Below are positions 38,149 to 64,000 of a DNA stretch of 64,000 nucleotides, piece by piece. The translations under genes and the position numbers were made by a program. The number at the start of each line of letters is the position of its first letter. The first letter of the stretch is position 1. This DNA comes from Gnetum montanum. Taxonomy: Eukaryota > Plantae > Gnetophyta. The stretch is taken from contig MNCI01000751.1 of assembly GCA_015680685.1 (NCBI GenBank), forward strand, positions 1-64,000, read 5' to 3'. The notes beneath the pieces were generated by a model. The model saw only the letters and a list, made by a program, of their open reading frames with translations, was not told the origin of the DNA and did no database searches.

Positions 38149-38793
38149 GCCCCCCCTGAAACCTCCGCTTGGAACGAGGAACAACGGAAGAGGGTGGCGG
38201 AGGAAGCCAGAGAGGCGGAAAGGAAGGAGTGGGAGGCGAAGTGGACAGAAGCCCTCGCCCAGGCCCGCAGCGAGTTAGAAGCCCAGTTCCAGGCAAGGGA
38301 GCAAGAACGGGCCAGACAGCAGGATATTCTGGCCGACGCTGCCAGGGCTCAGCTCACCGATGAAATCAGAGCCCAGGTGCGGGAGGAGCTCGCGCAGGAG
38401 GAAGAAACCCAGAGACAGAGACAATAGGCGGAGCAAGAGGAGCGGCCCCGGCTTCTGGAGGAGGAAGAGCAGAGGCAGCGACAGCTGGACCGTGCCCACG
38501 AGCATAACGCCAGACAGTGGTTACGTGGGGGACGATGCCTATATCTTACGTTAGGAATCAGCTGCGAGAGTTCATGGGGCGAACTTCGTAGATACATTCG
38601 CCGAACCTCGGCGCACTGCCACCCCGACACCGGCACCTCCCATGAGGACAGAAATAGACGACAGGTGGCCATGCAAGGTATCCAGCAGGCGGCCAGCTTC
38701 ATGGATACGGAGGAACACCGGAATACTCTCGATATTCTACACGAGCTAGTGTGCCCCGACTGTGCTTGCAGGCAGCTTCCTACGAACCCCTAA
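38149..38793 (+). pseudogene. LINE-borne coiled-coil + DnaJ-like J-domain ORF, copy 1 (one internal TAG at 38425)
   Basis: Reads WEAKW...LYLTLGISCESSWGELRRYIRRTSAHCHPDTGTSHEDRNRRQVAMQGIQQAASFMDTEEHRNTLDILHELVCPDCAC. HPD at 38620-38628, stop at 38791-38793. Confidence 0.8.
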
Positions 38794-39055
38794 GGGGTGG
38801 GTGGAATTTTCTTGGGGGGGNTTTCTTGGGGGGGCGCCCCCCCGCCCCCCTTTTTGTTGATTGGTGCTTTTTGATTTCTTCTCGTGGCTCTCTGCCCTCA
38901 GCCGTGCGGCCTGGGTGAGATGTTGTGAGCGATCGGGGGATCCTTCCCCCTCGGTGCGGCCACCGCTGGTGACCCCCCTGTTGTAATCTCTTGTAACATA
39001 TTTTTGCAATTTTCAGTAATAGAATCCCCAACACTTTCTCAAAAAAAAAAAAAAA
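38149..39055 (+). mobile_element. 5'-truncated L1 insertion consisting only of the coiled-coil/J-domain region, 3'UTR and poly(A)
   Basis: 16-bp TSD aacaataaaagatgtg at 38133-38148 and 39054-39069; poly(A) at 39041-39055. Confidence 0.92.
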
Positions 39056-39099
39056 CAATAAAAGATGTGACATCTACATCTGCAAATGAATCCAGCATT

Positions 39100-40720
39100 G
39101 CTTCTGAAAGGTGTGTCACTATTGCAACATAGCCTAGTGGGGAAATTTGTTTTCTTTGGGATGCACCTGAGGGTCGAACAAGTTTGACAATGGGTGGCCG
39201 CTTCATGGAATGTTAGAGAGGTGGAGGTGTGAACCTTTCCTGGAAACATTCCAATTTGTTGTAGACCAGAATAAAACCCTCCAAGGGAAACCATGGTTTT
39301 TTGGGGCAAGGGGCCTAGCATTGACTCACTGGCACCCTGGTACATAAAACAATCCCAACCTATTCACTAGGGTTCCAATTTGGGTTAGGGTTTTCAGGCT
39401 CTTGTGGGAGTTCTAGACACCGGACTTCCTCAAGACACTTGCAAGGTTTTTTAGCAAGTTCATCACTTTTGAAAAGTTCACGGCAGAGTAAATGGGTATG
39501 CACACTTCTATGTCTGGCACTCTTTGAAAATGGATGGAATGTTGCAGGAGATCCAAATGGAGATGTCGTATGGGATGGAAACCTTGAGAGTTGAATATGA
39601 GAATGTTCCTATAGAAGAAAGGGCCATAAGCATTAGGAATGCTATAGAAGATGGGGCCACAGATGCAGAAGTTCTAGCAAGATGCTAGCTCTATAGGAAG
39701 AATAACCACTAGGCAAAGGACTGCAAGTACCACCTCAAGAGTGTAGCCCCACAACAGAAGCAAAGGTCCTTGGAATTTACGGTCCAAGAAGCCTTCACAC
39801 ATAGATCAAGGCAAAAGGTCCCCACACATGGATCAAGGAAAAAGGCTAGAGAAGATGCCACATACTACAAGCTCACATTGCTTCAAGACCTGACTAAATG
39901 TTGCCCTCCCTTTTCGAGTTTGACTCTAGGACTAAAGGTGATGCCTTTGCAAGAGGTCAAGGGCTCTAAGAAGATTCTTGCCATTGCTTAGACAACCCAA
40001 GATGAGAATGAAATGCCTCCTGCCAAATAGGTTCCATTAGAGGATCTTCCTGTACTTGGTATATGGTGACCCCCTTGAGGAGGTCATCCATCCCAACCTT
40101 TTCATCCATGAAGTGGCAGATTTTGAAGGAGCAAAAAACTAAATTCAAAGTTTGTCCTAAGACCAAGAATGTGGGCAAATTGACCCTCTAGGATACTAGG
40201 TTCAAGAAAACAATGTAGGATTTAGACTTGAGAGTTCAACAGACCCCAAGGAAGTCTACAAAAAAAAATATCTAGCAATAGATCATGAAGCTTCTATCAT
40301 GGAATTGCAAGAGACAAGGTGCCTCGTAAAAACAAAATACCCTCAAGGATTTTATTAAGAGAGAGGATTATGACATTCTATGCCTGTAGGAAACAAAACT
40401 TCAACATACATAGAGACAGGTGTTAACTTGGCTAAGATGATTCTCCTACTTTGTGGACTGCAGAGGTCGAGTGAGGGGTTTAGCCACAATTACTAGATTG
40501 CATGCATGACTTGTTTATGCTTATGATTAGAGAAAACCTCACACACACTCCATCCTACTAAGGTGTGTCACCTAGGAGAGCAAGTTTAGGATCAACATGA
40601 TGAGAAATACAAGAACTTCCAACAAGATATGGGTTCCTCTCTTTAGAGGATCAAGAAATTGTGGATATGGTGCGTAGACAAGAAATGCCAACCACACGAC
40701 TAAGGAATGTGGGGTTAGGT
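39100..40720 (+). mobile_element. Decayed L1: ORF1 (DUF4283-like, zinc knuckle) and APE start at 40285, joined to a J-domain remnant
   Basis: VPIWVRV motif; MKLLSWNCKRQG...DILCL*ETK; then LHPTK...EKYKNFQQ at 40548-40625. Confidence 0.65.
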
Positions 40721-42569
40721 CTAAAGTTGCCGCACACAAGCATAAGATGGATGATGGGTGGACAATTGTGGGGAGGCACAAGAGGGCCTTGCTTGGGCCC
40801 TCGAAGGAGCCACCTACGCCTATTGAGGTGCCCAAGATTGTTGTGGTCTTGAGTTCACCCACTACGATGGTAGGGAAAACCCCTAAACCTAAAGACCACA
40901 CTCCTAAGGAGAAAAGGGGGGAGCTTCCCCTACTAGGAGACTGGGTGTGGTAGTGCGAGGATCTGTGATGCCAAAAATAGCAAAGATTTCAAGGGACGCT
41001 ACAGGGTTGGAAGCTGGATACCCAATGGTGACCAAAACAAGATGGGTCATGCAGTTGCCAAGGCTAATGGCTCAAAGCAAAACGACAATTAGAGATTGAC
41101 TTGGGATCATAGACAACCCTGAAAGGGATGTACAAAACATGGTCTATGTGTAGACCATGAAAATTCTGTTATGGAATTGTAGGGGCCAAGGTATGCCCTA
41201 TAAATGAAATACCCTAAAAGATATTGTGCATAGGGAAGACTATAACATGATTTTTTTTTATTTTGCAAAAAACCAAACTATAGCATAGAGAATCTCACTA
41301 GCTGTAGTGGTTTGGATGGTAGTCTCATCTTATCACCTGTCGGGGCTAGGTAGGTGGCCTGGCCACTCTTTCTAGAGTGTTGTTTGATCTAGTGGACTCT
41401 TCCACTTGGACCACAACCATCTTCCTAGCATCTTTCGAGTTGTGGCTTATAAACTTTTATGGGCCATAGGACTAGGAAGCTTGGTTGCAGGAGCTTAGAC
41501 AAATTGTGTTGCTAGTCCCGAATCGTCAAAAGTGGATTCTCGTTGGGGACTTCAATCCATGTCTCCATGTGTGGGAGAAAACTGGTGGCGACATTGACAA
41601 CCCACCTAGAGGTCAACACTTCCTACACTTTCTCCACTCCCATGACCTGGTCGATGTGGAGCTCAAGGGATGATGTTTCACATGGTGAAACAGATGACAA
41701 GGGAAGGACCGAATTATGTACAAAATGGACAAGGTTTGGGTCAGTACAAACATATTGATGAACTTTGAGGTTTAGGCTTTTGGGTAGGAATGTTAGGCCT
41801 TTGATCATAGGTCATTGGTGTTTCAGGTAGGGACTGTCATGTCAAGGGTCTACTCCTTTTTGTTTTAAGCAACTTGGTTATCCAAACCTTTGTTATGACC
41901 TTTGGTGGCAGCCATTTGGGTTGACTATCTATCCTAGATCAACCCTCAAGACTTCCTAAAGCATGGGCTTCATAGGCTTCAGCAGGAGATTCGCTTCAAG
42001 AAGATGGCTGAGAAATATTCCTTCCAGGCCATCAAGATGATGTTGACAGAAAAACTTTCTGAGATCTAAGACAAACAAGAGTTGGGGGACTCCCTGGAGG
42101 AAGCATAACAAGCTATGCTATAGGAGCTCTAGGAGGATTCAACCGAAGAGGAACAATACTAAAGATAGCATTTGAGAATCCAATGCCTAAAGGAGGGGGA
42201 TAGGAATACCTGATTCTTTAATGATTCCAGAAGAATTCACCACCTAGTTCACAAGAGCAACACCATTACAGGGACTAATGATATTGCTCAAGTGATGCAT
42301 GCGTATTGGGTGGACATTTGGCATTGTAGCGAAACCCTGCCCTTATCTGGCCAAATCTGGTTGATGGTGGAAAACAAAAAGTTCCTTGCACCTTTTACCT
42401 AGGTTGACCTAGAGTGGACCATAGCCTTACTGAAAATAGCTAGGCCTCCTGGACCTGATGGATAGCTTATCAAATTCTTTAAGAAGTACATTAACATACT
42501 AGGAAAAAATGTTTTGGATGCATTCAACCAAATGCTCCAATGAAGCAAGTGCATTGTGAGATCAACTAC

Positions 42570-45500
42570 GATTATCTAGAATAAAATCAATGCCAAAATC
42601 CAGAGGACACTTGCATTTGAAACTGCAGCAGTAGGAGGAACGACAGACGGGTGCTAGAGCGCAGCAGCAACAGACACAACGGGCAAGCGCTGGAGCGCAG
42701 CAGTAGTCGACGGGCACAAGAGAGGAGAGCCTGACAAACACACGGGAGGATAGAGGCGATGGGGAGCAATCGGTCTAGGCCACACAAGCCCATGGGGGGG
42801 AAGGGGTGCGAGCACCAGATGGGGGTATTGAGGCACACTATCGGGCCAACCACACCCTGCACCTCCGGGTTAGCAAGCCCCCAACAAAAGGGATCTACAC
42901 CATGCAATGGAGCCTCATTTGCTGCTTCGTTTCCAAGGGTGTTTGCCTGTGGATGGAGTTAATCCACAAGTGGGTGCAAGAGCACTGGAAAGTTGGCCAA
43001 GTGGAGGTCTGGAGTCTGTCCGAGACCCTGCTTTTGTTCATCTTTCCATCCCTGTAGGCTAGGGACTCGGTGATGTTGGGGGGACCATGGTTTTATGGGG
43101 CTCAGGGGCTTGCTCTAACTCCGTGGTGCCCGAGGGCACACCGAGAGACAAACCTGTTCACTCGGGCCCCGGTGTAGATGCGGATTTCTGGGATCCCATG
43201 GGAATTGTGGAACCTGGAATTCCTGGAAAAGGTGGCAGGTTTCTTTGGCGAATTCATTACCTTTGATAGCATGACCCAATCCATGGCAAGGATGGGCTTC
43301 ACTCGTTTTTGCGTATGGCCCTCATTCGGGAAATTGTTCTGGAGCTCCCTGGCAGGGAAGAACACCTCTGGGTCGAGTTTGAGAACCTAGAGGTTGAACT
43401 AGGCCTTGAACTCAAAGTGAAGGCCCGCAAGGGCAAGGGAGCCAAATGCACTTGCTGTGGGCAACTTGGGCACCAGGAGGACTGCCAATTCCAAAGGACA
43501 CGGCCAGTGCGGCCACCAGACCAAGCCAAAACAGATGTTTGAGGATGGGGGCTAGGTCACGATGGGCCGTAAAGGCCATCTGCACCCCTCGCCAGACCAG
43601 CCGCCCCCCAAACCCCCGCCCCCCTTGCCTAGCCCCCCCCNNNNNNNCCCCCTAGGCGAATGGGTGAACATGGTTCGGGGGAGCACTAAGTCACGTCGGC
43701 CATCGGAGTAGGAACCCACACCCGAGGACTCAGGCTGTTGCCTAGAGGTGCGAGAGGGGGAGGGTCACCCTAGCCGCCCGAGTGAGAGTTGGTCCAGGGC
43801 CAGATAGGACCAACGAAGTATAGATTTGGGGCTACAGTAGACCCTCCGGGAGGTCTACCAGCGTTGCTCTTCCAGGCATACATGAAAATTCTTAGTTGGA
43901 ATTGTAAGGGATAGGGTACACCCTATAAAAGAAATACCTTGCGTAGAATCGTCTGAGATGAAGAATGTGACATTGTCTGACTCCAAGAAACCAAGTTACA
44001 GGCGAGAGAATCTCACCTTCTCTCTTGGGATGGCTAGAAAATCCACATGCACCCCTGCATGGGTCGGGCCAGAGGTCTTGCTATACTGGCTTGCTATGAC
44101 ATGATGTTGGTGGACACCTCACACTGGACCATGACCATCCATGTCCCCTCCTAGGGGATTTGGCTGACCAACTTCTATGGGGCGCAGAATTGGGAACAAA
44201 GGCTACAAGAGATGGAACGCGTGGTGATGCTGGTGTCCGATCATCGGGCCTAGCTAATTGTTGGGGACTTCAACCAGCACCTGCATTCGTGGGAAAAATC
44301 CAAGGGGGCTGCCCCCCCACCCCGGGCGCACAAGAGTTTCAAGATTTCCTGACGGTCCACTCACTGGTGGATTTGCCCATTGGGAACTGCCAGTTCACCT
44401 AGAGCAATAGGAGGAAAGGCCTGGACCATGTCCTTTCCCAAATCAACTGGGTCTGCATCAGTTCCGACCTCCTCCTCCGATTAGCCGCAAGGGTTACAGG
44501 GCAAGAAAGGGTCGCTTCGGATCATCGGTCCCCTGATCCATTCGCTCGGGCCGGAAAGGCCCCAAACCCCCCAACCATTCTACTTTGAGGCAACCTGGTT
44601 GTCTAAGCCTTGGTTGAGGCCATTAGTGGAGGACATTTGGGCAAACTACCAACCTGGCCAAGGAGACCCTAGGAACTTCCTTAAGGAGGGTTTACTCTGC
44701 CTGAAATGGGCCATCAGGGCCCTACCAGTGGAGGACAAATTCTCTTTTAGGATGGGTCGCAAGATGCTCCAAGACAAACTTATTCAGGTCCAGATCAAAC
44801 AGGAGGATGGGGAGGACCTACATGAAGAAGAGTAAAACATCTTGCAACAACTCCAAGGCCTTGATCTCAAAGAGGAAACATACTAGAAACAAAGGTCACG
44901 AGTCACCTGGCTCCGAGAAGGGGACAGGCAAACAAAATTTTTCTTTGCCGTCGCTAAAACACGAGGGTGGGGCCAACCAAGTTGTCTACACACCCAAGAT
45001 GGGAGGATTATGGATGAACCACAGAACGTCACTAGGGAGTTGACTCAATATTGGGAGAAGATCTGGGCCAAGCAACCCACCAACCCCATTTCGGTCCCAA
45101 TTGAGCAGGTGCTAAACGAGGAAGACAACACGCGGCTATTGACCCTGTTCTCTTGGTAGGAACTCGTCACCACCATCAACGACATGCCAAGAGGGAAGCC
45201 GCTTGGCCCAGACGATTGGAATCTCGAGTTCTTCTGGACCTTCCTGGATATTGTGGGACCCAATATCCTAGACGCCTTCAACCTTATGTTGGCTAAGAAG
45301 CAAGTTTGAAGGAAGATTAACTGCTCTCAAATCGTGTGCATCCCGAAGCAAATGGAGGCACACCGCCCAAAACACTTCCGTCCTATCGGGATCTGCAACG
45401 TTTTGATTCGGCTCTTCTCCAAATTGATTGTGCATAGGCTAGCGCCTCTCATGCCCAAGCTAGTGGGAGTTAATCAAGCAGGGTTTGTGCAAGGTCGAAC

Positions 45501-48500
45501 CCTGCAGGACCAGGTTATCCTCATGCAAGAGGTCTTCCACTCGCTTTGGACTACGGGTTTCCCTGGGCTCTGTCTCAAGCTCAATATTACCAAGGCGTAT
45601 GACACACTTAACTGGGAAGCCTTGGCTACCATAATGCAACGAAAAGGTTTTGACNNNNNNNNNNNNNNNNNNNNNNNNNNNNNNNNNNNNNNNNNNNNNN
45701 NNNNTTGTTCATCATTGCTATGGACCTAATGCAACTTTATTGTAGAACGTCGAGGGTTGACGGATTAGACATCACAGGGATGGAATGTTGGGCGGAGCAC
45801 TATGCGGATGACACAATGTTGCTTAGTCAAGCAGGGGTCCCACAAGCACGGTGCATCAACATCGCCCTTTCTCGATTAGTGGATGAGTTGGGACTAGAGA
45901 TTAACAAGGCCAAATCCTCAGCTCATTTTATTAACGTGGATCCACAAATTAAAAATCGGGTTGTGCAAGTCCTGAACATCCTACCCAAGATGATCACGAA
46001 CTCTTACTTGGGTATCCTACTCTTCCAGTGGGGGCGGAGCATGTCTTGGGGGACATTGTTGGAGAAAGTTGAGCGGAGGATGGGTCAATGGGCAAACTGT
46101 TTTCTGACCCGGAAGGGGCGATTGGTTGTGGCATCAAGGATTCTCACAGTGATTACCCAGTTCATGGCAGCAGTTGCCACCCCTCCGAACACCATCATTA
46201 ACAAGATCAACATGTTGATTAGGCGTTTACTCTGGATGAGGGGTAGAGGGGGGGCAAACTCCACCTTGTTTGCTAGGAACAGGTCGTGCACCCTCGTAAT
46301 GCGGGGGGGCTAGGCATCTCATCGTTCGAAGATGAGCTGATGGTAGGACAACAACGCTTGCTGCTTCGTTTCATGTGCCCGCATGGGGAATTGGCCTAGT
46401 AGATCCACATTATGAATGCGAAATATCATCGTTGGGAGGCGGGGCTACAAGATTCAAGGCCCTAGCAAACACTCTGTTGCCATGCGCGTGTGATGCAGGC
46501 GCAGAGGTGGTTGGGCTTCAAGCTACGTCGACTAATGACGGCCAAGTACCTGCAAGTGTCAGGCTGGCAGTAGATTTGGAGGGGGTGGCTCCAAGAGAAG
46601 ATCAAAATGTTCTTGTGGTTACTGCGAAATGATGTGTTGCTAGTCCGCACGCTTCTACGCAGATGTAGCCTTCCTCTAGATGACACCTGCCCCCTGTGCT
46701 GCGCTACGCCAAAATCGTGGATTGCACGTACATGTGCACCACGTGGCACACAGCTGAGGTGACCGCCTGATGCGCCTCACCAGGGACTCCTAGGCCACGC
46801 TACTTTTATGGGTAGCGTGGAAGACAAGAAGCCGCGTTGTTTTCTAGTAGATCAGGCTACCCCTGTCCCCGTTGGTGGCTTCCCAAGCTCTCTGCGCATA
46901 GAACGAGATCGAGGCAACAATGGGGGTCACGTCAACCTTTGAGCCTGACTGCGCTACATTCCGTGAAGAGGAAGAACTCTGGGAATTGGTGGAACAGTGC
47001 AGCTGGGACAGCCCCTTGCAATGGCTGATAGGTGACCCAGATCTTGCAGATGACACATTTTTCTTGAACTGGTGCAATGACTGGACTTACTTTCGGGGAC
47101 AAGAGGTAACTGTCATGGAATCCTCAATTGCCAGCTGTTTGGGGGCCCAGGCCACTGGCAAGGTCATTTTATCTTCCACTCGAGGATTGTAGGACGCGGA
47201 ACTATTTTTCGATGGGCTAGTGCCATGCACACAAAGTAGGCAAGTGCCTAGATCCTCCTTGCCCTGAATCTAGGCCTAGGCGACAGATCTGGTGGACTAT
47301 TTTTTTGTCCAGTTTGGCAACGGATCCAAGCTACAGGGCATCCACTTTGCCTAAAGTTGGGGTGCCAGGTTAACCTATCGCGGTTTTTTCTAGCAGCCCT
47401 ACAACTTCAAAGACGGGGCCAATCTTGGCACTATGGCCACTATCCCCCACTCCCCCCCCCCTCCCCCACCTGGCCCCTCGTCCTCAACCAGTCGGGAACC
47501 CCTATGGACCCGCCCCCCCCCACCCCCGGTAATGACCTACACGCAGAAACGACGGAGCCAGCGTGGATGGTGCCTCCCAACCAGTCCCACGACATCGGAA
47601 TCATCTCCGCCTTAGACATCCAAGTGCAATGCAAACTAGGACGAGGAGTTGCAATAGGCTGCACAGTAAGCCGCAACCGAGGCGGGCGAGGCCGAGCGGC
47701 AAAAATGGGAGACAAAATGGCAGGAATCCCTCATGCAGGCACAGGCGGAGTTGGAGGCCCAGTTTAGGGAAAGGAAGCAAGAGTGGGTGAGGTAACAAAC
47801 CCTCCTGGCTGATGTAGCCCGGGCCCGGCTGGAGGATGAGATCCAGGCCCAAGAGCGGGAAGAATTAATGCAGGAGGAAAATGCCCGAAGGGAGCAGGAG
47901 GAGGCGGAACGGGCATAGCTGGAACGTGCTTAGGAGGAGGAGGCCCAACGGCAGAGCCAACTAGACTGGGCTCACGAACACAATGCCCGCCAGTGGCTTA
48001 GAAGTGGACACTGCCCATACCTCATCGTGGGCATCAACTGCAACAGCTCTCGAGGAGAGCTCAAACGACATATCCGCCGAACCTTAGTGCGCATCCATCC
48101 GTATGCGAGGACGTCGACGATGGATCGGAACAGACGGGAGTCGACCATGTAAGGAATCTAGCAAGCCGCTAGTTTTGTCAACATGGAGCTCCATCGGAAC
48201 ACTGGATATTCTGCATGAGTTGGAACGCCCACACTGTGCCTGCCGTCGACTACTGACGAACCCTTAGCAGGGTCGCTGCTTTCAACCCGCAGGGGTCGCN
48301 NNNNNNNNNNNNNNNNNNNNNNNNNNNNNNNNNNNNNNNNNNNNNNNNNNNNNNNNNNNNNNNNNNNNNNNNNNNNNNNNNNNNNNNNNNNNNNNNNNNN
48401 NNNNNNNNNNNNNNNNNNNNNNNGCATGTTGATTTTGGGGTGTTACCCCACCACACATGGGCCATCGTTGATGTCCCGATACTTGTAATCTCTTGTACTA

Positions 48501-48542
48501 TATTTTTCAATAATACATTCCTGACTATTTCCTCAAAAAAAA
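42570..48542 (+). mobile_element. Near full-length L1 nested in the older L1 (ORF1, ORF2, J-domain region, poly A)
   Basis: 15-bp TSD tgtgagatcaactac at 42555-42569 and 48543-48557; poly(A) 48535-48542. ORF1 from ~42590 has GPW, a DUF4283-like region and CTCCGQLGH. ORF2 ATG at 43882 (MKILSWNCKG), FRPIGICN, KAYD, HYADD (YADD at 45801-45812), zf-RVT. Confidence 0.93.
47433..48267 (+). pseudogene. LINE-borne coiled-coil + J-domain region, copy 2
   Basis: WETKW...AHEHNARQWLRSGHCPYLIVGINCNSSRGELKRHIRRTLVRIHPY...GI*QAASFVNMELHRNT/LDILHELERPHCAC. HPY at 48096-48104. The start is uncertain. Confidence 0.75.
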
Positions 48543-50761
48543 TGTGAGATCAACTACTCCAGAATTGTGCTTGTCCCCAAGGTGGTGAATCCTATTGAGC
48601 CTTCCCAGTTTAGACCCATTGGGGTTTGTAACATGCTGCTCCACCTATTTACGAAAATGTTGGTTAGGAGAATGTCTCCGTTGATGCCAACTTTGGTGTG
48701 TGTGCAGCAGACTATATTTATTAAAGGATGATATATCCAGGACTAGGTCCTCCTCTTATAAGAGATTCTACATTCCATGTAGGAGGCTAAATATCTAGGT
48801 ATGTGCCTTAAATTGGACATTATGAAAGCCTATGATATTGTCAGCTAGAATGCTCTCAGGGAAATAATGGTTAGAAAGGGGCTTCATCTGAAATTTGTTA
48901 ATTTGTGCATCCATCTCCAAGAGTTAGGTGCATATTCCATTGATATCGATGAAAAGCTTTGGGGGTTCTCCTCCCCTAGCCATGGATTAAGACAAGGGGA
49001 TCCCTTGTCCACCCATCACTTCATCATAGTTGTAGATTGTTAGGGTGGAATGTCTGTCAAAACACTATGTGGATGATACAATCTTGTTCATTCATGTTGT
49101 GGTTCACCAAGCCCATGCAATGAACAGAGCTCTTTATAAGATGGCTAAAGAGGTTGGCTTTGAAATCAACAAAGGAAAATCCAAACTTCACCTACTTAAT
49201 ACTAATTGGTGTGTGAAGGGAATGGCTTGCCAAGTGCTACGTATCCTCTTGGGAATGATGATAGACTCCTACTTGGGGATCCCCACATATGCCTGGCATA
49301 AGAAGAAATCCTAGTCCAAAGTAATCCAAAATCTCCAACAACGCATTGGGCACTACACAATGCACTATCTAACTAGAAAGGGGAGACTTGTTCTTGCAAC
49401 TTCCATCCTCTTTGCCATATCTAGATTTATTGCCTTTGTTGCCTTCCCTTCGAAGGACATCATACAAAGAGTAGATCAATTAGTAAGGAACTTCATTTGG
49501 TTGGGGGAAAAGGGGGGCAAACACATGCACCTTGTTTGCTAGGACACTGTGGCCAATTGCGAGGTGGCTGGGGGCCTTGGGGTCCTAAAGTTCCAAGACA
49601 CCATCACCATGGGGTACCAACTCCTTACAAACTGGCTAATGCAATCTAATAACAACTTGGCATAGTCGATTCACATCATGATAGGCAAATATCAGCAATG
49701 GACCACGGGAACCCACAACTAGCACATCTAGCAAGCTTTGTCTAGACATTCACTCATGATGTCCCAAGCAGAAATGCTAGGGGCACAACTGTGAGACATT
49801 ATCAAAAATAAATACTTGGCTGTTAAAAGATGGAAAGGGATTTGGGCAAGGAAGCTCCAAAAAAAATAAAAGTGTTCCTTTGGCTCGTGGTCCATGCTAC
49901 TATGCCGCTGCACTCTTTAATTCGAAAGCGGGGCTTGAATATCATTGACATATGTCCCCTTTATGTGTCTGCACCCGAATGACATAACACTTCCTTTATC
50001 AATGCAAGTTTGCAAAGGCCGTTTGATGGGCTACTGCACTGCACACGCCAATCATGCTTGATGGGGACTACAAGGCTATGGTGATTCTTTGGTGCCTATG
50101 GAGGGCACATAATGCCCTTATTTTCTGCTCTGAGCTACTTCCCCCTCTTGTGCAAGTTGTGGCATTTGCTTTGTGATTGTGGCATGAGGCTATGTGCACA
50201 ATGGGTATTACACCTACCTATGAGACTGCATGTGTGGGTTACCATCAGAATCAGGTTCTCTAGGGTTTGATTTCACACATTGGTTGGACTGACCTCCTGC
50301 AGCTGTTGGAAGGGGACCTGATCTTGCTGATGGGTCCTTTTAACATTGGAGGGATGCCTCTACCACTTTTCAAGGTGTATGGATCACCCTCATTGAAGAG
50401 GCTATCTCTCAGTACCTTGATATCCTAATGGAAGGTGAAGTGATTCTCCCCATGGAAACAAGGCTCCAAGATGCAGAGGGTTTCTTCTTGGGGTCTATTC
50501 CCAATCAGGAAGCCGGTAGGTGCCCAAGTCTACCCTACCGCCACTGTGGCAAGATGCTACCAAACTAATTGGCCGCTCTTTCGTCTAGTTGAGCAATGTC
50601 TAGAATTTATAGGGTATGCACTTCGTGTTCCTAAAATGCTTGTGGCTGGGTTGCAGTGTTAACCTCCCAAAATTCTTCCTCGCTTCGTTGTGTCATTAGT
50701 GGAGGGGTCAACACTTGGGCCTGATCTTGGCACTTTGGAACATAGTGCAACCATTGGCGCC

Positions 50762-51601
50762 ATGACCAGCCCAACTAATGTCCTACTCAACAATCTATGG
50801 CCATCAATGGATAACTATGGATGTCCCTCCTATAGCCCCCTAATATAGGAGACTACAAGGATGATGTCTTCTAGGGCTAGGAAGGGGACAAGGGTGGCTA
50901 ATGAACATCCCTCTCTTGACTCTTCTTTGGCCCATGCAGAACATTTTCGATAGATGCTCCAAGAAAAATTTCATACTGACTTGGCCAAGGCCATTGAAGA
51001 AGTTGCTGCGAGGGCGAGGGCAAAGAAGCAGGTCCTATGGGAGGCTAAATGGCAAGAGTGGGAACAATAATACAAATGTCTGACAAAGCAAGCAAAGTTG
51101 CAATGAAGAGAATTGGCCAAGGAGGAACAATGATGCAAGGATTTACAAGATGTAACTATCAAGAATGACGTCAAAGAAGAGCTACATAGGAAAATCAAGC
51201 AAGGGCTGCAATGTGAGGAGCAAGAATGTAGGGAGCATGAGGCTGCAGAATCAAAACAAAAGAAGGAAAAACTAGAGGAAGAGTAGATACAATGGTGGCA
51301 AGACAAAGCTCACAAGGCCAATGAGCATTGCTAGTTTCAGGAAGACAAGGGTCCCTATGTCATCATACAAGTAAATTGCAATAGGTCCTAGTCTTCTATT
51401 CGTAGGCATATCAGGAAGACCTTGGCCAAACCTCATCCAGACAGGTCTGAAAATGACATCAAGCACAACTGAAGGAAGGAAAAATACAAGGAATTCCAAC
51501 AAGCTACAGCGTTTGTGGCTACCAAGAGGCATTGGGCCATCTTAGATGCAATTCACTCTCAAGAATGGGCTATATGCCCATGCACTAGGTTGACACAATA
51601 A
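50762..51601 (+). pseudogene. LINE-borne coiled-coil + J-domain region, copy 3
   Basis: WEAKW...PYVIIQVNCNRS*SSIRRHIRKTLAKPHPDRSENDIKHN*RKEKYKEFQQATAFVATKRHWAILDAIH...CPC in one frame with stops. HPD at 51434-51442. Confidence 0.8.
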
Positions 51602-51989
51602 TTGTACAGCCCACTATTGGGGGCTCCTAGCTCTTCTAGTTTTTGGTGTTGTGTTTGGTCTATGGTTGCGGGTTCTTTGGTTGTGTCTATTTGGGTCACC
51701 TGTCTATCGGTGTTCTGTCTTAGGACATAGGGGGTGCTTCCCCACTATTTGGGTTCCTTTCTTGGGTTTTTGTAGGTTTCTTGGTGTTTGGCTTCATCCT
51801 CTGGGCTCGTACAAAACTATGGGAAGCCCACAGAAAGTGGGTTTGAGAGGGTAGTGGGGGTGTCTCTCCCCCAATTTTGTTGTACATGTGACTTTGCGGA
51901 TGTGTTAATAACACTACCCAAATTCTTCTCAAAAAAGAAAAAAGAAAAGAAAAGAAAAAAGAAATGCCTTATTGCACTAGCAAGAACTT

Positions 51990-54085: not shown

Positions 54086-54169
54086 CTGCAAATACATCAT
54101 CATACTATAAAATAAGCCAACAGATGGTTTCGGATTATCATCTTATGTAACCATGAACTTGATTTTTAC

Positions 54170-54313
54170 CTTGTTACTAATCAAGTCAAGAACAGCACGG
54201 ATGAGCCAAGGTAACGACCTTGAGCCAAGAAGCTTAACAATAGCGCACATGTGTGGTAGACCAAAAAACTTGCTATACAATTGTCCAAAAGCTTGGTAAG
54301 CCATATTTAACTC
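54170..54313 (-). CDS. PIR: PIR exon (ELNMAYQAFGQLYSKFFGLPHMCAIVKLLGSRSLPWLIRAVLDLISNK)
   Basis: Strong PIR motif FFG.PH...V.LLGSRSLPWLIRA.LD; 144 nt. I found no upstream exons, so they probably lie beyond 64000. Confidence 0.95.
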
Positions 54314-55109: not shown

Positions 55110-56790
55110 CAGAACACCTAATTTATAGCCATCCTTTTACCCCACAAGTCTGGGACTGTATTGTTGTGGTGGATAACTGTATGCTTACTGGTGACAACCT
55201 GCAGCCAATTATCACCATTTGAAATGCACACAACCACCATGTCTTTAGGCCTACCCCAATCCCTCCCCCACCTTCTTGTTGTCAAGTCCCTGACTCTGTG
55301 AAGGGAAGTGACTTCTGCCATTGGTATTATGCTGACAATGTAAACTTAACTTGGCCATTTCAAAGATATGATTCAAAGCTGTGGAGGCTGGTTTGTGCTA
55401 TTGGCTGGAACATCTTTGTTCCACTTCTAAAGTGTGAAAGGGAAACATCTTTGTTCCACTTCTAAAGTTTGAAAGGGATGTAGATATCATGTAATTCTGC
55501 AACTACTAGAGGAGTACCAGCATCCAATCAAAGCTCGAAGATATTCATTTCACATTTATGAAGAGTCTAAAGCAAGGGTGACATGTTAACATTCCAATGT
55601 TTTTCCTCACCCACCTTCAGCAAATATACACAGGGAACCATTTGGTCCTCATCCTAGCCCTCTAGGAAGAATCCAAAAAAGAACAAAACTTCAAGTCCAA
55701 AATTGCTCAGAAAAATGCCCTTTCTAGAGAAGATGGTCAGAGATTTGCAATATTCTTCCCTCGGCAAAGCAACAAGCCTTCATCTGCCTTCTTGATCATT
55801 TAGCAAGAAGGTCCTTAGGAGGTGAAGCCTGCTAGTGTATGTCCCCAGGTGCAATTGGAGTTGGAGTTCCATGTGAGAACCTTCAACCATGAATAAGATG
55901 GTGTCATGTTCAATGATGAGAATTCACAGGATGGGGCCCTGCCCTATGAGGGGAATTTAGGGGTGCTGTGGTGTAGGTTAGGCAATCTAAGACAAGCTAG
56001 GATTCCCTTCAGCAAGAGATGATGAAGAAAATCAGGGAGTAAGTTCAAGTTGATGTCAAAGCCCAGGCTGAAGCCTGCACACAAGAGTTTGAGACTTAGG
56101 TAAGGTGTGAGGCTAAAGAGTATGCTAAAGCTCATATCCTTAAAGCCACAGAGGACACTAAGGTGGACCTGAAGTGGAAGGCTCAATAGCACAAGACGGT
56201 GGAAGTATAGACCCTATGGAAGAGGATTAAGCGAGAGCTTATGGATGAGGCTAAAAAGGCATAGGAGAAGCGGTAGCACTAACAAGATATGCAGCAGAAG
56301 TAGAGGGAAGAGATGAAGAGGAAAAGACGCCAAGAAATGAAAGACAATGGATGTAGAAGGGAGGAGACTGCCTCCGGAGATTAGGAGGAACATCACCACA
56401 AACAGCAATAGGAAACTCAACACAAGCAGGCAAAGGATGCAGAGAAGGAAGAGATCAAGAACCACTTTCAAGGGAACTTGGAAAGCATGCATTGACACTA
56501 GCGAAAAAAGGGAAAATACCCTTGTGTCAAGTTATGTATCAACAACTGTTCTAATTATCTCTACCAAAAAGGTCGTGAAACACAAGGCCATCTCTTTCCA
56601 TCCAGACAAAGCCTAATATTTCACCATGAAGGATGAAGGAATAGGATGATCAACTAGCAAAACTTCAATGTTTCAATGAACCCTCCAACCTAGTTAAAAT
56701 AGAAACTGAACAACAGATTTTAGATCCACTACATAGGTTCATGCCTAATGGTATCTGTACTTTCCTCCATGCCTAATGGATCTTCTCTTC
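55110..56790 (+). mobile_element. Highly decayed 5'-truncated L1 (zf-RVT remnant, coiled-coil, J-domain copy 4)
   Basis: MLTGDNLQ...QSLPHLL at ~55180-55280. E/K/Q-rich frame at 56000-56500. KAISFHPDKA (HPD at 56599-56607), then AKLQCFNE...QILDPLH. Confidence 0.65.
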
Positions 56791-56909
56791 TCCCCTTCCT
56801 GTTCAGATCCAACTCAACAATTCCAGATGATTCAAAGCAAATTTTGAGTGATCCAAGTTCATTATTTTTGTCGATAGAATTGGCATTTCTTTGAAAGTTG
56901 TTAAATATC

Positions 56910-59900
56910 TGAACAGGAAGGAGAGAAGAAAAAATTGAAAAAATAATTCTCTCTCTCTCTCATTCATCTTGAATCAACAATTACAACAATTTATAGGAAA
57001 GAATTACAAAAGAAAATCTGCTAAATAAGGAACAAGAAATCTAGAAAATAACTAACAAATATAGATGACAAAAATTAATTCTGAGAATCAACTAATTTTG
57101 GCAAGTTGATCCACAAAATCAAGCCCTAATTGATTTAGAGAATCAACTAATTTTGCTAAGTTGATCCAACTTTATTTTGACTTTCTAACACTCCCCCTCA
57201 AGCTGGTGAATAGATATCTATCATTCCTAGCTTGCTAACAAAAGAATCAAAGCTTGGTCTACATAAGGCCTTCGTGAGAATATTAACTTCTTGCATCTTG
57301 GTAGAAATGCAGGATAGAAAAATTGTTCCATTATCAACTTCATTTTTTATAAAATTCCTATCAATTCTTACACGCTTCATACAATCATGTTGGATTGGAT
57401 TTTGGACGATACTGATGGTAGACTTACTATCGTTGAACAACCTCATTAGACCACTTTGGGGTATCTTGAGATCTTCCATCAACCTCTATAGCCAAATGAG
57501 TTCACAGATTCCTTGTGCTATAGCTCTATATTCAACTTCTGCACTACTACGTGCTACAACAAATTGTTTTTCGCTTCTCCACGTCACTAAGTTTCCCTAG
57601 ACTTTGGTACAATACCTGTAGTAGACTTGCTATCTTCAATGGCTCTAGCTCAATCTGCATCAACAAAACCAACAATGTCCCTTTCACTGCACTTCTTGAA
57701 CAATAGTCCCTTCACTAGGAATCCTTTTAGATACCTTAGAATCTAATTTACAGCATCTTGGTGTCTCTTTGTAGGAGCATACATGAACTAGCTACCAATA
57801 CTTACATTGAAAGCAATATCTAGCCTAGTGAGAGACAAATAGATGAGTTTACCAACCAAGCATTGATAGCTTTCTCGATTTACAAAACGATCTTCTTCAA
57901 AAGTCTTCTATTTCTAGTTTCATTCCACTGGAGTCCCTGTTGGTCTACACCCCATCTTGCTAGTCTCTTTGAGTAAATCCATGATATATTTCCTTTGGGA
58001 GATGAAAATCCCTTTCTTGCTTCTAGCAATTTCCATTCCAAAAAAAATACTTTAGTGGACCAAGATCTTTGACTCTAAACTTTGCTTCGAGCTTTCTTTT
58101 GAGATCTTCAATCTCATGATCATCATCTCCTGTAATAACTATATCATCGACATAAACAATAAGGATTGATCTTTTACCATGCTTCCCTTTTTTTAACAAA
58201 TAAAGTATGATCAGCTTGTCCTTGCTCATATCTAAGTTTCTTCATCACACCACTAAATCGGGTAAACCAAGCTCAAGGAGATTGTTTGAGTCCGTAGAGC
58301 GACTTCTTTAATCTACATACTTTACCCGTACCTTCTTGAGATTCAAAATGAGGTGCTATCCTCATGTAAACTTCTTCTTCCAATGTACCATGTAGAAAGG
58401 CATTTTTTATGTCAAGTTGATGCAACCCCTAATCCAAATTTGCAGCTAAAGACAATAAAACCCTAATAGAATTGAGTTTTGCCACAAGAGCAAATGTTTC
58501 TACATAGTCTATCCCATATGTCTGGATGAACCCTTGTGCCACAAGTCTGGCCTTGTATCTTTCAATGCTACCATCAAGACCATACTTGACAGTAAACACC
58601 CATTTGCTCCCCACAAGTTTCCTCCCTTCAAGTAGGTGGACTATTTCCCATGTTTCATTGTCTTCCAAAGCCTTCATTTCCTCCATCACAACTTCCTTCC
58701 ATTTGGAACCTTCCAAAGCCTCAAAGATATCCCTAAGAACTTGTGTCTCATCAACCTTTGAAAGAAATGCCTTGTAATTACATAATAACTTGGAGTATGT
58801 GAGATAATTAGAAATGGGATATTTTACACATGACCTCACTCCTTTAAGTCATCAATCTTCATTATCATTCACCACCTCAAACTACTTCTATATACCTCCA
58901 TCACTTGGGTCTATCACTGGTTTGGGCTCTTGGTTTTGTTGAGGAGCTTGTGTTCATCTGGAATATCTCAGAATTGGTTTTGGGTGTGATTCTCACCTTG
59001 GATTTGAATCTGACTCTTGGACTGATTTGACATGAGGTGTGACATGATTTTTTGATGAGAACTTGGGCATAGCAATTGGTAGGGATATGATTGAATCCCA
59101 GTGTTGCTCTTCTATAGGTTGATTCTCCCCCTGAAGAGTAACATTGGGATAAAAGAGTTGGTTGGTGTTCGAGAAATGTAACATCACATGATACAAAAAT
59201 ACGTTTTAAAGGAGGGTAGTAGCAGTTATACCCTTGATATGTAGGAGAACACCCTAAGAATACACACTTGAGGGCTTTTGGATCAAGTTTCCCATGATTT
59301 GGTTGAGCATTATGTACATATACAACACATCCAAAGACATGGGGTGGAAGATTGTTGAGAATTCGTATAGAAGGAAAGGCTGATAAGAGAAGATTTAGTG
59401 GAGTTTGGTATTGAAGATTTTTAGATGGTACTCGGATTAATGAGATATGCAAATGTGAGAACAACTTCTCCCTAGAAGAATTGAGGAACATAGATGGTAA
59501 ACATAATTGATTGTGCTACCTCCAAAAGATGTATGTTTCTCATTTTGCAACCCCATTTTGTTGGGGTGTATAGGCATAAGAACTTTGATGAAAGATTCCA
59601 TGCTCACTTAAATATGCTTTAAGCTCATGAGAAAAATATTCTTTACCATTATCTAAATGAAGAATATGAATGGATGATTGGAAAACATTTGTAACGAGCT
59701 TATGGAATTCTTTGAACAGTGAGCTAACTTTGGATTTATCTCTCATTAGTTACACCCAACATACATGAGTGTGATTGTCTATGAAAGTTACAAACCAGCG
59801 TCCCCTAGTTAAAACTAGTACTTGTCAAGGATCCCACACATCACTATGAACAAGATGAAACAGAACAGAAGGTTTATATGGATGAGAAGGATGAGATGTT

Positions 59901-61713
59901 TGAATTTGTTTTGCATGAATACAATTATCACACTTGAAAGATGAAGGATCTTTATTAGTAAACATATAGGGACACAAATGTTTCAAATATGTAAAATTTG
60001 GGTGTCCTAGTCTTTAGTGCCAAAGCATTACCTCAAACTCAGGAATGGACTTGAAAGAGATAAATGAGGTTGTAGGGGATTCAAACTTTGATGGAGAAGT
60101 AGTACCAATGAGATAATAGAGGCCATGTTGCTCCTCAAAATTGCTAAGCATCCTCCCTGATGAAAAATCCTAAAACTCACAATGAGAAGGAAAAAAAGGT
60201 TACAACACAATTCAAGTCTTTGGTAAGCTAGATAATCAAGAGCAAATTGCATTTTAAATTTGGAACATAAATTAGGATTTTAAAATGAACCCAAGTAGTT
60301 TTACATCTCCATGACCTATAGTTGAGCTTAGCGAACCATCAGCCACTGTGATTCTAATTTTATTCACACAATCTTCATACATACAAAATGCTTCTAATGA
60401 ACCAGTCATGTGGTCGGAGGCTCTTGTATCTACGATCCAACCATTTAAGGAGCCCTTGTACGACAATAAAGAAGAGACAAGGCTAGTATTACCTTGTTGG
60501 GCAGCAAGTGCAGTAGGAGCTTTAGGAGTACCCTCAGTTTCCTTGCTATTTTGGGAGACATTCAACAATTTCCAGAGTACCTATAGTTGTTCATCAGTAA
60601 ACAAGTTTGAGGCAGCCTTTGTCTCATTTAATGATTCAGCTGTGTATGCTAACTTGTTGTTCCATCATTGGCTCCATAGTTTCCAATTCACAGGGTTTCC
60701 ATGTACATCCCAACATATATCCTTGGTGTGATAGGGCTCGTTACAATGCTCACACCATGGTTGTTTATCTTTTCCCTTTTGGTTCCTTGAGTTACCTCCT
60801 TCACAGTTTGCAACTAGAGACAAACCATGGGACACAACTTTAGTAGGTGGATTTTTAGAGTGCATCACCACTTTCTTTCTACTTTCTTCCCTCCTCACTT
60901 CTGCAAAAACTTCCTTCAAGGAGGGGAATGGTTTAGTACCAAGTACTTGTCCTCGAACTTCATCAAGATCTTTGTTAAGGCCTTGCAAAAAATCAAAAAT
61001 CTGCTCTCTTTCCACCATTTTGTTATACATGATCACGTCATCAGGAGATTTCCAAGTCACATTGTGGGATACATCAATTTCTTGCCATAATTCTGAGAGA
61101 GTATTGAAATATTCAATGACTAATGAGTTTACCTTGCCAAGTATTGCAGATGGCATATTAGACTTTGAAGCTTTGTGAGATGTTTTCAATGTCTGAATAC
61201 ATCTCTTTTACGGTATCCTAGATCTCCTTGGTTGTTTGATAAAATAGATACAACTTTCTGATTTTGGGCTTCATTGAATTAATCAACCAAGCCCTCACTG
61301 TTGAGTTTTCCACCTCCCATTTGCTGTATGTGGTAGAACTTTCTTCAAGCATGGCAGTTGGTCTTGTCATGTAGCCCATTTTGCCCCTCCCTTTGGTCAC
61401 GAACAGGATTGATTGATACCATTGACAAATTATTTCCGTTCAGTTGATGTATGGTGATTTGAAGAGAATGATTTTCAGGTTGAGAGAAGGAAAAGGATAA
61501 GGGTGGAGTTGAGATAGTCGAAATCAAGGAAGATTCCATTGTAGAGAATTCAAGTGCCATGCTTGCCATTTTGGTTTGCCAACTGAGTTCTCACGCCAAT
61601 GAAGGAACTAGCTCCGATACCATGAACAAGAAGGAGAGAAGAAAAGATTGAAAAAATAATTCTCTCACTCTCTCATTCATCTTGAATCAACAATTACAAC
61701 AATTTATAGGAAA
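56910..61713 (-). mobile_element. Decayed Ty1/copia LTR retrotransposon; 5' LTR interrupted by a LINE
   Basis: 3' LTR 56910-57190, PPT 57191-57200, PBS tggtatcggagc 61611-61622 (tRNA-iMet), partial 5' LTR 61623-61713. gag (WLINSM, CEHCNEPYH), WIVDTRASDHM, integrase TPQQNGVA and GKLDPKA, RT YKARLVAQG and YVDD, RNase H. Confidence 0.95.
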
Positions 61714-61715
61714 TA

Positions 61716-64000
61716 TTTTTTTTGAGAGAGAGAATGTTCAGGTTTTAAATTAAATTACTAGAGAAAAAAGTAAAGTTATAAGAAATGCACAACCAAAGGT
61801 GGCCAACATGAAAAAACCTACGATTAGGGGGAGATACCCCAAGGGGTGGTTCACCAAAACAAGGGGGTGGGGGTGGGGATCAGATGCCAAGGGCTCACAA
61901 CGCAAACCCACAACACCAAAACAAGGCCAGATCAACCATCTAGAGACAGCGGGAACAACAACCTAGCAAGCAGGAGCGGAATTACAGGTGTGCAGGTAGC
62001 CTATGACACACCCAGTGTGGTCGCTCAAGAGCATGGAGTATATCCAATGTATTACGATGCAATTTAGAATCCATGAAACTGGCGGCCTATTGAATTGCCT
62101 GCATGGCCGCCTCCCGATGACTCCACTCCTTAGCCAATGTGCCCCTGTCCAAGTGGAAGCACATAGATGTATGGCGTATGTGCCACCAGAGCACCCCCCA
62201 CAAGCAATCACAATTTATGCCCAACACAACATATGGGCATCTCCCCTCCCTAAGCCATTGTCATGTGCTCTATTTGTGCACTTGGTCCAACTGCCTCTAT
62301 CTTTGCCGCTGCTCTTCCTGCTCTTGATCTTGCTACACCCATGCCACCCTCTTGCCCTCTCTATAGATTGCCTCCCTCTGCAACAACTCCTCTCGAATCT
62401 AGGCATGGAGCTCATTTGCTAGCCTGGCCCAGGCCGCCTCTACCATCAAGGTTTGTTGCCAAAGCAACTCGCACTCCCACTCCCGGAATCGGGCTTCTAG
62501 GCTCACCTACGCCTAAGCTAGGGTTTTCTCCCATATGGCTTCCCAATCTCGTCTTTCATCAGCTCAGGTAGTGGCCGCCGCCTCCTCCACCACACAATGG
62601 AGCTCCTCCTACCAAACACGTAATGTCTAGCCTCTATTTGCAGAAAAGCGTCTACCACCGCCATAGGGTTTGGAACAGCCAGTTCCCGAAGGCCAGCCTA
62701 CTTCCGCAAGTAAACCACCACCAATGTGGCCCTCGACCAATAGGACCTAGAGGGATCAGATGGACCTACCTGCGACTAAGATGACCCTGAGGGCTTGGAC
62801 AGCACTATCCCCAGCCGCAGCCCATATTCCCCCCACCAAAGGGCCAAAATAAGCCCCAAGTGACTGTTCTCTTCTATTGTTGCAAGACAGCTAGAAAGAA
62901 ACAAGGCAAGTTAACCCTAGCTCCCAGTTTCAGACATTTGAGGAACACAAAGTGCATGCCCTAAAGTTTGGACCCATTGCCAGACTAGACAAAAAAGCAG
63001 TCCACCAACTCAGCAACTCAAGCCCAAACAGGTGGCAAAGCGGACTTGGGCACCTACTGACTTTGCGTGCGTGGCACCAGCCCCATGAAGAACATGTCAG
63101 CGTCCTATAACCCTCAGGTAGTGGGGAGAATGATTTTTCCCTCTTCCTAGGCCCCCAGATACCTGGCAATCACTATTTCTGTAAGGGTGATTTCGACGCC
63201 TCGCAAAAATGTCCTGTTATCTTGCCAATTAGTAAAAAAGGTGTCATTCGGGAGGGCCAGGTCACCCACCAACCATAGCAAGACATGGTCCCATCCTCAA
63301 CATTCCACCATCTCCCAAAGCTCAGTTTTTGCTTGAAACGCCACATAGCCAAGCTCATAGGTCGGCATAACCCCCATCACAAACGACACTGTTGGAAGAC
63401 TTGATGATTTCTGGTTTTCCAAGCTTCCCATAAAAGTAAAGTGGCCTTGGAATTCCCCGAGAGCGTCAGAGAGGAAGGCCAACCCATCACCTACCACGTG
63501 GCACACATGTAAATACATTGAAAGGTGAAATGTAGGACAGTCTCAAGCTCATTCCCACAGAGCAGGTAGGTGCCATCAATGTCAAAGCCACACCTTTTTA
63601 AATTCATCCAAACCGGCAGGGCATTGCTTTCAAGAAGCCATAAGAAGACTTCGATTTTTTTGGGCAAATGCCCCTACCATATCTGCATCTAGCCAAGTAC
63701 CAATGGGTACATGGCAGAAAGTAGTCGGCGCGGCTCGCAATTCAACCACCCCTGCAACTGCATTCGCTATGCATGGGCACAAAGTGTCCACCACGGCCTC
63801 AAGTCATGCACCCCTGATTGCTATCAAATGTATTTGCCCTTCATTATCCATATCCAATAGGTTGTCTCCTCATCTTGATGGGTGAATTTGACAAGCAAGC
63901 GATGCTAACCAAGTGTCATTTCATCCTCGAATTTAGTGACCCCCAAACCCCCCACTACTCAAGGGCGCACAATCCGATCCTAGTTGGCCAACCGCAATTT
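61716..64000 (-). mobile_element. 3' portion of an L1 (zf-RVT, ORF2 C-terminal domain, J-domain region, poly A) inserted in the copia LTR
   Basis: T run at 61716-61723. KIEVFLWLLESNALPV..NLKRCG..ETVLH...C at ~63520-63660. The element runs off the window. Confidence 0.88.
61982..62620 (-). pseudogene. LINE-borne coiled-coil + J-domain region, copy 5
   Basis: WEAIW...QWLREGRCPYVVLGINCD...HIRHTSMCFHLDRG...AAMQAIQ*AASFMDSKLHRNTLDILHALERPH.VC. HLD (cac ttg gac) at 62147-62155, stop at 61982-61984. Confidence 0.78.

Follow-up and report, generated by a model that had tools for sequence, protein, structure and literature searches.

A Probable Third Coding Region with a C-Terminal J-Domain in an L1-Clade LINE Lineage of Gnetum montanum

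Introduction

Can a plant retrotransposon carry a J-domain of its own and, if so, in what coding context and to what effect? The question is raised by a stretch of 64,000 nucleotides from the gnetophyte Gnetum montanum (GenBank assembly GCA_015680685.1, contig MNCI01000751.1, positions 1 to 64,000 of the forward strand), referred to here as the window. Several long interspersed nuclear elements (LINEs) of the L1 clade in this window carry an additional cassette between their second open reading frame (ORF2) and their 3' untranslated region (3'UTR). A preliminary description, made from the DNA letters, had considered the cassette to encode a coiled coil followed by a DnaJ-type J-domain and had suggested that it was a stable functional module of a LINE clade.

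We propose, with a probability of roughly 80%, that the window contains members of a plant L1-clade LINE lineage with a third coding region, encoding a charged helix and a C-terminal J-domain, which has been under selection, is likely to constitute an ORF3 and would recruit Hsp70. The parts of this proposal differ in their strength. The cassette is homologous to J-domains, it is part of the LINE and it has been maintained by purifying selection, while the contact with Hsp70, the client and any benefit to retrotransposition are suggested by analogy with J-domain proteins of known action.

Four Copies of One Peptide

Four copies of one homologous peptide occur in the window, in the insertion c1 and in the elements E2, E3 and E6 (Table 1). 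When the best copy, that of c1 (38149-38790), was used as a tblastn query, it detected those of E2 (47697-48264, E 9e-30), E6 (62557-61988 on the minus strand, E 2e-23) and E3 (51002-51592, E 2e-12), the last with 31% identity. Moreover, a hidden Markov model (HMM) built from the four copies and run against a six-frame translation of the whole window retrieved the same four exclusively, with E-values of 1e-93 or better.

The four cassettes yield a nearly gap-free alignment with a constant order of motifs. WE(A/T)KW is followed by a long stretch rich in E, R, Q and A, then by (C)PY..LGI.C and a basic IRRT or IRKT, after which come HPD, or a variant of it removed by one or two bases, a Q-rich helix, HRNTLD and a short Cys/His tail. 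This is the layout that had been outlined earlier, and the motifs listed at that time reappear on translation. The HPD is intact in c1 (38620-38628, CAC CCC GAC) and in E3 (51431-51439). The cassettes have decayed to different degrees, with a single internal stop in c1 (38425-38427) and six stops and one frameshift, close to the end, in E2.

The preliminary description had counted six LINE-associated copies. Four of these are solid, but the other two fared less well. The copy at about 56000-56760, which lies in the old fragment E5, is probable, although it gives a profile E-value of 6, requires a frameshift and receives no support from tblastn. The copy claimed at about 40530-40700 is unsupported, since it consists of a short HPT...EKYKNFQQ stretch seen by eye that was detected neither by tblastn nor by the profile.

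Identity of the J-Domain

Protein searches were performed with natural stop-free pieces only. The longest of these, 121 amino acids from the pseudogene copy c1 (38428-38790), served as the Pfam query and matched positions 2-63 of the 63-position DnaJ profile (PF00226) with an E-value of 3.8e-5, at a score of 24.1 bits that lies short of the curated cut-off. When the best piece was compared by phmmer with 1.84 billion protein representatives, four matches were obtained, two of them tandem-repeat artefacts and the other two ordinary J-domain proteins. An alignment of the window's own stop-free pieces, containing no outside homologues, provided the basis both for a profile search against PDB sequences and for an AlphaFold model. 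In the profile search, all 37 matches at E <= 1 were J-domain proteins, the best with an E-value of 3.2e-4.

The model, with a mean predicted local distance difference test score (pLDDT) of 77.5, shows a long helix followed by helices at residues 38-42, 50-63, 72-91 and 95-108. The latter four form the J fold, with an antiparallel hairpin of helices II and III, and the HPD (residues 65-67) occupies the loop of this hairpin, which corresponds to J-domain topology. Among the first 40 or so Foldseek matches to PDB structures nearly all were J-domains, with probabilities up to 1.00, template modelling (TM) scores (target) up to 0.77 and root-mean-square deviations (rmsd) of about 2.2-2.7 over 64-70 residues. 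VIA-align gave Z-scores of 6-8.0, with rmsd values of 1.8-2.9 across 64-73 residues, and placed J-domain-containing chains in each of its top 36 rows. In the ESM Atlas, the DnaJ set accounted for 24 of the 30 feature hits.

Thus Pfam, the PDB profile search, phmmer, and the AlphaFold fold together with its Foldseek and VIA-align matches all agree with the J-domain assignment first made from the motif pattern, and we take the homology of the cassette to J-domains as established. A basic helix II and the HPD are the features through which J-domains contact Hsp70. Every copy of the cassette has a basic helix II, like canonical J-domains; it reads ELRRYIRRT in c1, ELKRHIRRT in E2 and SIRRHIRKT in E3, and it aligns with EIKRAYRRQ of human HSP40.

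The region preceding the J-domain is highly charged. A 92-amino acid piece upstream is predicted by AlphaFold to form one unbroken helix over residues 3-91, with a pLDDT of 96, and in the piece that follows the predicted helix continues through residue 33, such that it would extend over about 120 residues in total. Charged residues make up 42% of this region, and E, Q, R, A or K together 73%. The long helix implied by the earlier coiled-coil assignment is therefore reproduced by the model, but the heptad pattern does not rise above that of shuffled sequences, hydrophobic enrichment at the a and d positions being 0.19 versus 0.28 +/- 0.06 in shuffles, by a test that is admittedly crude. As modelled, the region is more like a single charged alpha-helix than a coiled coil.

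The LINEs That Carry the Cassette

The cassette is part of the LINE. This is seen most directly for E2, a full-length element bounded by perfect target-site duplications (TSDs) of 15 bp, in which a 5'UTR, ORF1, ORF2, a spacer, the cassette, a 3'UTR and a poly(A) of eight A residues (48535-48542) follow one another. E2 has inserted into the reverse transcriptase (RT) region of another LINE, denoted B, which belongs to a diverged sub-lineage and whose 3' part is the element E3. The two halves of B jointly span the region from ORF1 to an A-rich tail, and no TSD was found for this element. The c1 insertion is truncated from the 5' end, such that it retains the cassette, the 3'UTR and a tail of at least 13 A residues between 16-bp TSDs, and its insertion site, TTTT then AACAAT, is A/T-rich and of the endonuclease type. 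These insertions also present a local cluster, with three LINE insertions of one family lying within 14 kb, E2 nested in B and c1 at the outer 5' edge of B.

The cassette had been reported to lie directly after ORF2 in four copies. For E2, E3 and E6 this is borne out by tblastx, which aligns the three elements collinearly from the RT through the cassette, E6 running from the zf-RVT domain. For E5, the fourth, what is found is a match of 40 codons to the end of ORF2 (tblastx E 1.5e-7), which, with the cassette profile E-value of 6, leaves this fragment weak overall. A 3'UTR and poly(A) follow the cassette in four copies, as had been claimed.

Table 1. Coordinates of the LINE copies in the window and of their parts.
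Feature	Position	Strand	Evidence or remarks
c1, left TSD copy, AACAATAAAAGATGTG, 16 bp	38133-38148	+	Identical to 39054-39069; preceded by TTTT
c1, 5'-truncated LINE insertion with cassette only	38149-39053	+	16-bp TSD, tblastn, HMM
c1, cassette	38149-38793	+	
c1, J-domain, helices I-IV	38530-38751	+	Pfam, AlphaFold, Foldseek, VIA-align
c1, 3'UTR	38794-39040	+	
c1, poly(A)	39041-39053	+	
c1, right TSD copy	39054-39069	+	
LINE B, 5' part, with homology to ORF1, endonuclease region and RT start of E2	39070-42569	+	tblastx, collinear with E2 42887-45093
E2, full-length LINE	42570-48542	+	Perfect 15-bp TSDs, TGTGAGATCAACTAC, at 42555-42569 and 48543-48557
E2, ORF1, DUF4283	43178-43387	+	Pfam PF14111, 31.2 bits versus cut-off 27.2
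E2, ORF1, CCHC-like knuckle	43447-43485	+	Located 3' of DUF4283
E2, ORF2, RT region	45313-46310	+	RVT_1 E 1.3e-3 on 45705-46313; collinear with RT of E3; contains gap 45655-45704
E2, ORF2, zf-RVT	46574-46759	+	PF13966, 27.7 bits versus cut-off 27.5
E2, ORF2, conserved C-terminal region, ending in (H)LGLILALW	46776-47428	+	tblastx to E6 (<=53%) and E3 (32-64%)
E2, spacer between ORF2 and cassette	47429-47639	+	Unalignable between copies; frame shifts across spacer
E2, cassette: charged helix (predicted), J-domain, Cys/His tail	47640-48267	+	
E3, 3' part of LINE B	48558-51964	+	RT from 48558; zf-RVT 49827-49979; ORF2 end near 50760
E3, cassette	50954-51601	+	Followed by 3'UTR and A-rich tail 51931-51964
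E5, old fragment	55543-56620	+	ORF2-end match 55543-55662, then charged region and frameshifted J-like remnant with HPD (by eye)
E6, LINE leaving the window end	61716-64000	-	zf-RVT 63494-63673; ORF2 C-terminal region 62856-63557
E6, cassette	61985-62620	-	Followed by 3'UTR and poly(A) 61716-61723

Among the domains that identify these elements, RVT_1 matches on stop-free pieces are weak (E 1.3e-3 and 6.9e-4), and zf-RVT, with a cut-off of 27.5 bits, scores 27.7 in E2, 27.5 in E3 and 47.0 in E6. No Pfam match to an endonuclease was obtained on any stop-free piece of the corresponding region, which is nevertheless conserved between E2 and element B in tblastx comparisons. In addition, an ORF2 stretch of about 650 nucleotides between the zf-RVT and the spacer is conserved among the elements, at 32-53% in protein (46776-47428 in E2, 50057-50738 in E3 and 62856-63557 on the minus strand in E6). 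At this position, between the zf-RVT and the end of ORF2, many plant L1 elements carry an RNase H domain (RVT_3). Here the stop-free pieces from the zf-RVT to the cassette gave no Pfam match, RVT_3/RNase H included.

All four LINE 3' ends (39030-39053, 48525-48542, 51920-51964 and 61716-61735, the last on the minus strand) carry TTCTC followed by an A tail, while the 3'UTRs are otherwise barely alignable. The TTCTC end motif may be an RT recognition element. Since all four 3' ends share it together with the A tail, the cassette must be considered internal to the element, and an origin by 3' transduction was rejected, given that the cassette lies upstream of a 3'UTR end common to all copies.

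Element B contains about 1.6 kb (39483-41085) between its ORF1-like and endonuclease-like parts. This includes a second endonuclease-like fragment at 40285-40491, matching E2 43882-44088 in tblastx, and the weak HPT...EKYKNFQQ stretch mentioned above, and it may represent a rearranged or deleted LINE fragment that inserted at this place.

Two runs of N interrupt E2, one in the RT (45655-45704) and the other in the 3'UTR past the cassette stop (48300-48423), and neither touches the coding part of the cassette. The flanks of both gaps are collinear with the sister elements and imply losses not far from the lengths written as N, about 82 nucleotides versus 50 N in the first gap and about 110 versus 124 N in the second. 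Because the same 15-bp duplication flanks the whole of E2, both gaps lie inside one insertion.

Purifying Selection on the Cassette

Synonymous sites are saturated between the copies, with proportions of synonymous differences (pS) of 0.78-1.0, and selection was therefore assessed by codon-position counts and by the uncorrected ratio of nonsynonymous to synonymous differences (pN/pS) in place of the corrected ratio, dN/dS. Between the cassettes of c1 and E2, mismatches at the first, second and third codon positions amount to 0.35, 0.25 and 0.59, respectively (p = 2e-11), and the excess at third positions, about twice the first and second, is also seen in the helical part and in the J-domain separately. 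For E2 versus E6 the corresponding values are 0.44, 0.26 and 0.58 in the cassette and 0.36, 0.29 and 0.54 in ORF2. Uncorrected pN/pS values range from 0.29 to 0.55, and every bootstrap interval lies below 1.

The cassette is present in two sub-lineages that are about 31% identical in protein and it evolved under purifying selection while these diverged. The earlier suggestion of a stable functional module of a LINE clade is thereby strengthened, as it now draws on elements bounded by TSDs, on the two sub-lineages and on patterns of codon position and pN/pS that resemble those of ORF2. A ratio near 1 together with an unconserved HPD would have spoken against such a module, and this was not observed, pN/pS lying below 1 and the HPD being intact in c1 and E3.

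Proposed Structure and Mode of Action

The third coding region, located between ORF2 and the 3'UTR, would encode first the predicted helix, which spans about 120 residues and abounds in E, R, Q, A and K. The C-terminal J-domain comes next; its helix II is basic, its HPD occupies the II/III loop, and helices III and IV are of the usual kind. The Cys/His tail comes last. The cassette is copied along with the element. In the manner of class C J-domain proteins, the product may use its helical part to dock, or oligomerise, on the element's own proteins or on its ribonucleoprotein (RNP), while the J-domain, judging from the role of the HPD, would recruit cytosolic Hsp70 and trigger its ATPase at that site. 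The outcome could be the folding of the large ORF2 protein or, alternatively, the assembly or remodelling of the RNP.

The fullest form of this proposal, a retrotransposon equipped with its own Hsp70 co-chaperone, in which a true third ORF, placed downstream of ORF2 on one RNA and translated from it, delivers Hsp70 to the RNP and is needed for efficient retrotransposition, is put forward tentatively, and we rate it slightly below even odds.

Weighing the Evidence

A number of observations speak against the reading of a selected J-domain coding region that recruits Hsp70. The Pfam score of 24.1 bits is lower than the gathering cut-off of 27.8; all of the Foldseek E-values exceed 0.05, which is weak and expected for a domain so small; and Z-scores of 8 or less are reachable by chance for helical models. 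No LINE-linked relative outside the window was found by phmmer among the 1.84 billion protein representatives. Every cassette copy in the window is a pseudogene, such that neither an intact ORF3 nor its start codon nor the stop of ORF2 can be demonstrated, and the HPD is lost in two of the four copies, reading HPY in E2 (48096-48104) and HLD in E6 (62147-62155). Moreover, some plant J-domain proteins work without an HPD or without Hsp70 (bioRxiv 10.64898/2026.09.14.751395). As regards the HPD, both HPY and HLD are one or two base steps removed from it and they occur in copies with 6 and 11 stops, respectively.

The alternative that survives best concerns the coding context and holds that ORF2 itself ends in the cassette as an in-frame C-terminal domain, in the order RT, zf-RVT and J, with all frame offsets resulting from decay. 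We consider this somewhat unlikely. Indels in the spacer could have arisen, given that all the copies are pseudogenes, and E2 and E6 do share another frameshift just upstream of LILALW. However, the frame of the cassette is offset by -1 relative to the last ORF2 motif, (H)LGLILALW, in all four elements (E2, E3, E6 and E5), whereas frameshifts are otherwise rare, at one per approximately 800 cassette codons. The spacer of about 200-260 nucleotides between this motif and the cassette is unalignable, even between E2 and E6, although both of its flanks can be aligned, and in every copy a stop occurs in the ORF2 frame 0-31 codons past LILALW. Because of the constant offset, the unalignable spacer and the stops in the ORF2 frame, a separate ORF3 is judged from the sequence to be the most likely arrangement, at about two to one over an in-frame ORF2 end.

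In E3, at 50755-50765, a TGA terminating the ORF2 frame shares bases with an ATG of the cassette frame (ATGA); this arrangement, seen in this one decayed copy, likewise favours a separate ORF. ATGA overlaps are known from termination-reinitiation coupling.

A second alternative, which we regard as unlikely, accepts a true J fold and assigns it a role independent of Hsp70 or directed against silencing, for example by interfering with chaperone-dependent small-RNA or chromatin pathways instead of aiding the folding of the element's own proteins. There is a precedent in a subfamily of Arabidopsis J-proteins, associated with the PKL remodeller that has been linked to transposable element silencing, which is functional despite mutation of the HPD (bioRxiv 10.64898/2026.09.14.751395), and client-binding domains do not typically resemble the cassette's long charged helix or its Cys/His tail. 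Nevertheless, the HPD and the basic helix II are kept in sub-lineages with only 31% identity, which is to be expected if the contact with Hsp70 has been selected, and no feature of the window bears on silencing. A selected coding region that would act via Hsp70 remains our preferred reading.

That the cassette derives from a host J-protein gene, a piece of which was captured by transduction or template switching and is carried as a neutral passenger of no use to the element, is very improbable. LINEs do transduce and capture host sequences, and no homologue was found elsewhere among the 1.84 billion protein representatives, but the cassette is internal, upstream of the shared 3'UTR end, it is common to two deeply diverged sub-lineages, and its codon-position pattern and pN/pS resemble those of ORF2. 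Finally, a chance likeness to J-domains in a charged, helical and decayed sequence, to which the sub-threshold Pfam score, the Foldseek E-values and the modest Z-scores might point, is scarcely credible when four methods give J-domains as the sole family, with matches over the full domain and the HPD in the correct loop.

Other Elements in the Window

The whole window resembles transposon sequence and contains no evident host gene. The G+C content of the LINE copies, at 45-55%, stands out from a background of about 30-38%. The interval from E5 to the E6 poly(A) holds a decayed Ty1/copia-type long terminal repeat (LTR) retrotransposon (about 56800-61715, coding strand minus), the LTR ends of which, at 56910-57005 and 61623-61718, are 95% identical over 96 nucleotides and which retains gag, integrase and RT-like pieces at 57200-61200. 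An open 180-amino acid ORF with Ty3/gypsy-type RT motifs is present at 1821-2363 on the minus strand, and gag-like ORFs of another LTR element occur at 10414-12199, also on the minus strand.

Relation to Known Systems and Significance

A close parallel for the putative ORF3 product is provided by the class C (type III) J-proteins, such as auxilin/GAK and P58IPK, in which a scaffold or targeting region precedes a C-terminal J-domain with an HPD and which bring Hsp70 to one particular assembly. P58IPK (2y4t) was among both the structural and the sequence matches of the cassette. There is no sequence relationship beyond the J-domain, however, and the corresponding part of the cassette is a single long charged helix, as predicted, encoded by a transposon.

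The large and small T antigens of polyomaviruses carry their own J-domain, by which they use host Hsc70, and they resemble the LINE lineage in being products of a genetic parasite that encodes a J-domain, although no specific similarity was seen. Their J-domain is N-terminal and belongs to an animal DNA virus, whereas the cassette, from a plant non-LTR retrotransposon, has it at the C-terminal end. A functional rationale is offered by the hepadnavirus P protein, an RT that needs Hsp70/Hsp40, with Hsp90, to reach its RNA-binding state; there the virus borrows host J-proteins, while the LINE would encode its own. To our knowledge, the folding of LINE proteins and the assembly of their RNPs are poorly understood, and their dependence on chaperones has been deduced solely from host interaction screens.

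The elements share with plant L1-clade LINEs an ORF1 with DUF4283, the RT, the zf-RVT and poly(A), and they likewise show 5' truncation, nested insertion and TSDs, here 15-16 bp long. Plant L1 elements have two ORFs, with endonuclease and RT domains and often an RNase H as an extra domain (PMC9033089), in contrast to the present lineage, where a coding region for a helix and a J-domain follows ORF2. According to the main text of a Pfam-based survey of L1 elements in 503 genomes, DUF4283 is the dominant and characteristic domain of plant L1 ORF1, and that main text makes no mention of DnaJ (PMC5203782).

A precedent for the gain of a domain at this end of the element is found in the R1/TRAS LINEs of insects, in which a superfamily 1 (SF1) helicase domain has reportedly been added at the end of ORF2 (PMC4686597, PMC5563155). 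There a LINE lineage likewise gained and stably kept an extra domain downstream of the RT, but it is a helicase domain that forms an in-frame fusion with ORF2, in insect hosts. The J-domain would add to the domains that non-LTR retrotransposons have acquired, namely RNase H, esterase and helicase.

The preliminary description knew of no earlier account of such a cassette, and in open-access full text, about 8.4 million papers and preprints, a J-domain was likewise not found described for a LINE or another retrotransposon, Repbase and Dfam lying outside this scope. A practical consequence for genome annotation is that J-domain matches in plants can be transposon ORFs. If the proposal is true, the lineage would be the first known case of a retrotransposon with an Hsp70 co-chaperone of its own, and the cassette would form a counterpart, outside viruses, to the polyomavirus J-domains. 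An element-encoded J-domain would also point to Hsp70 as the host machine that matters to these LINEs, and it would offer a testable handle on it.

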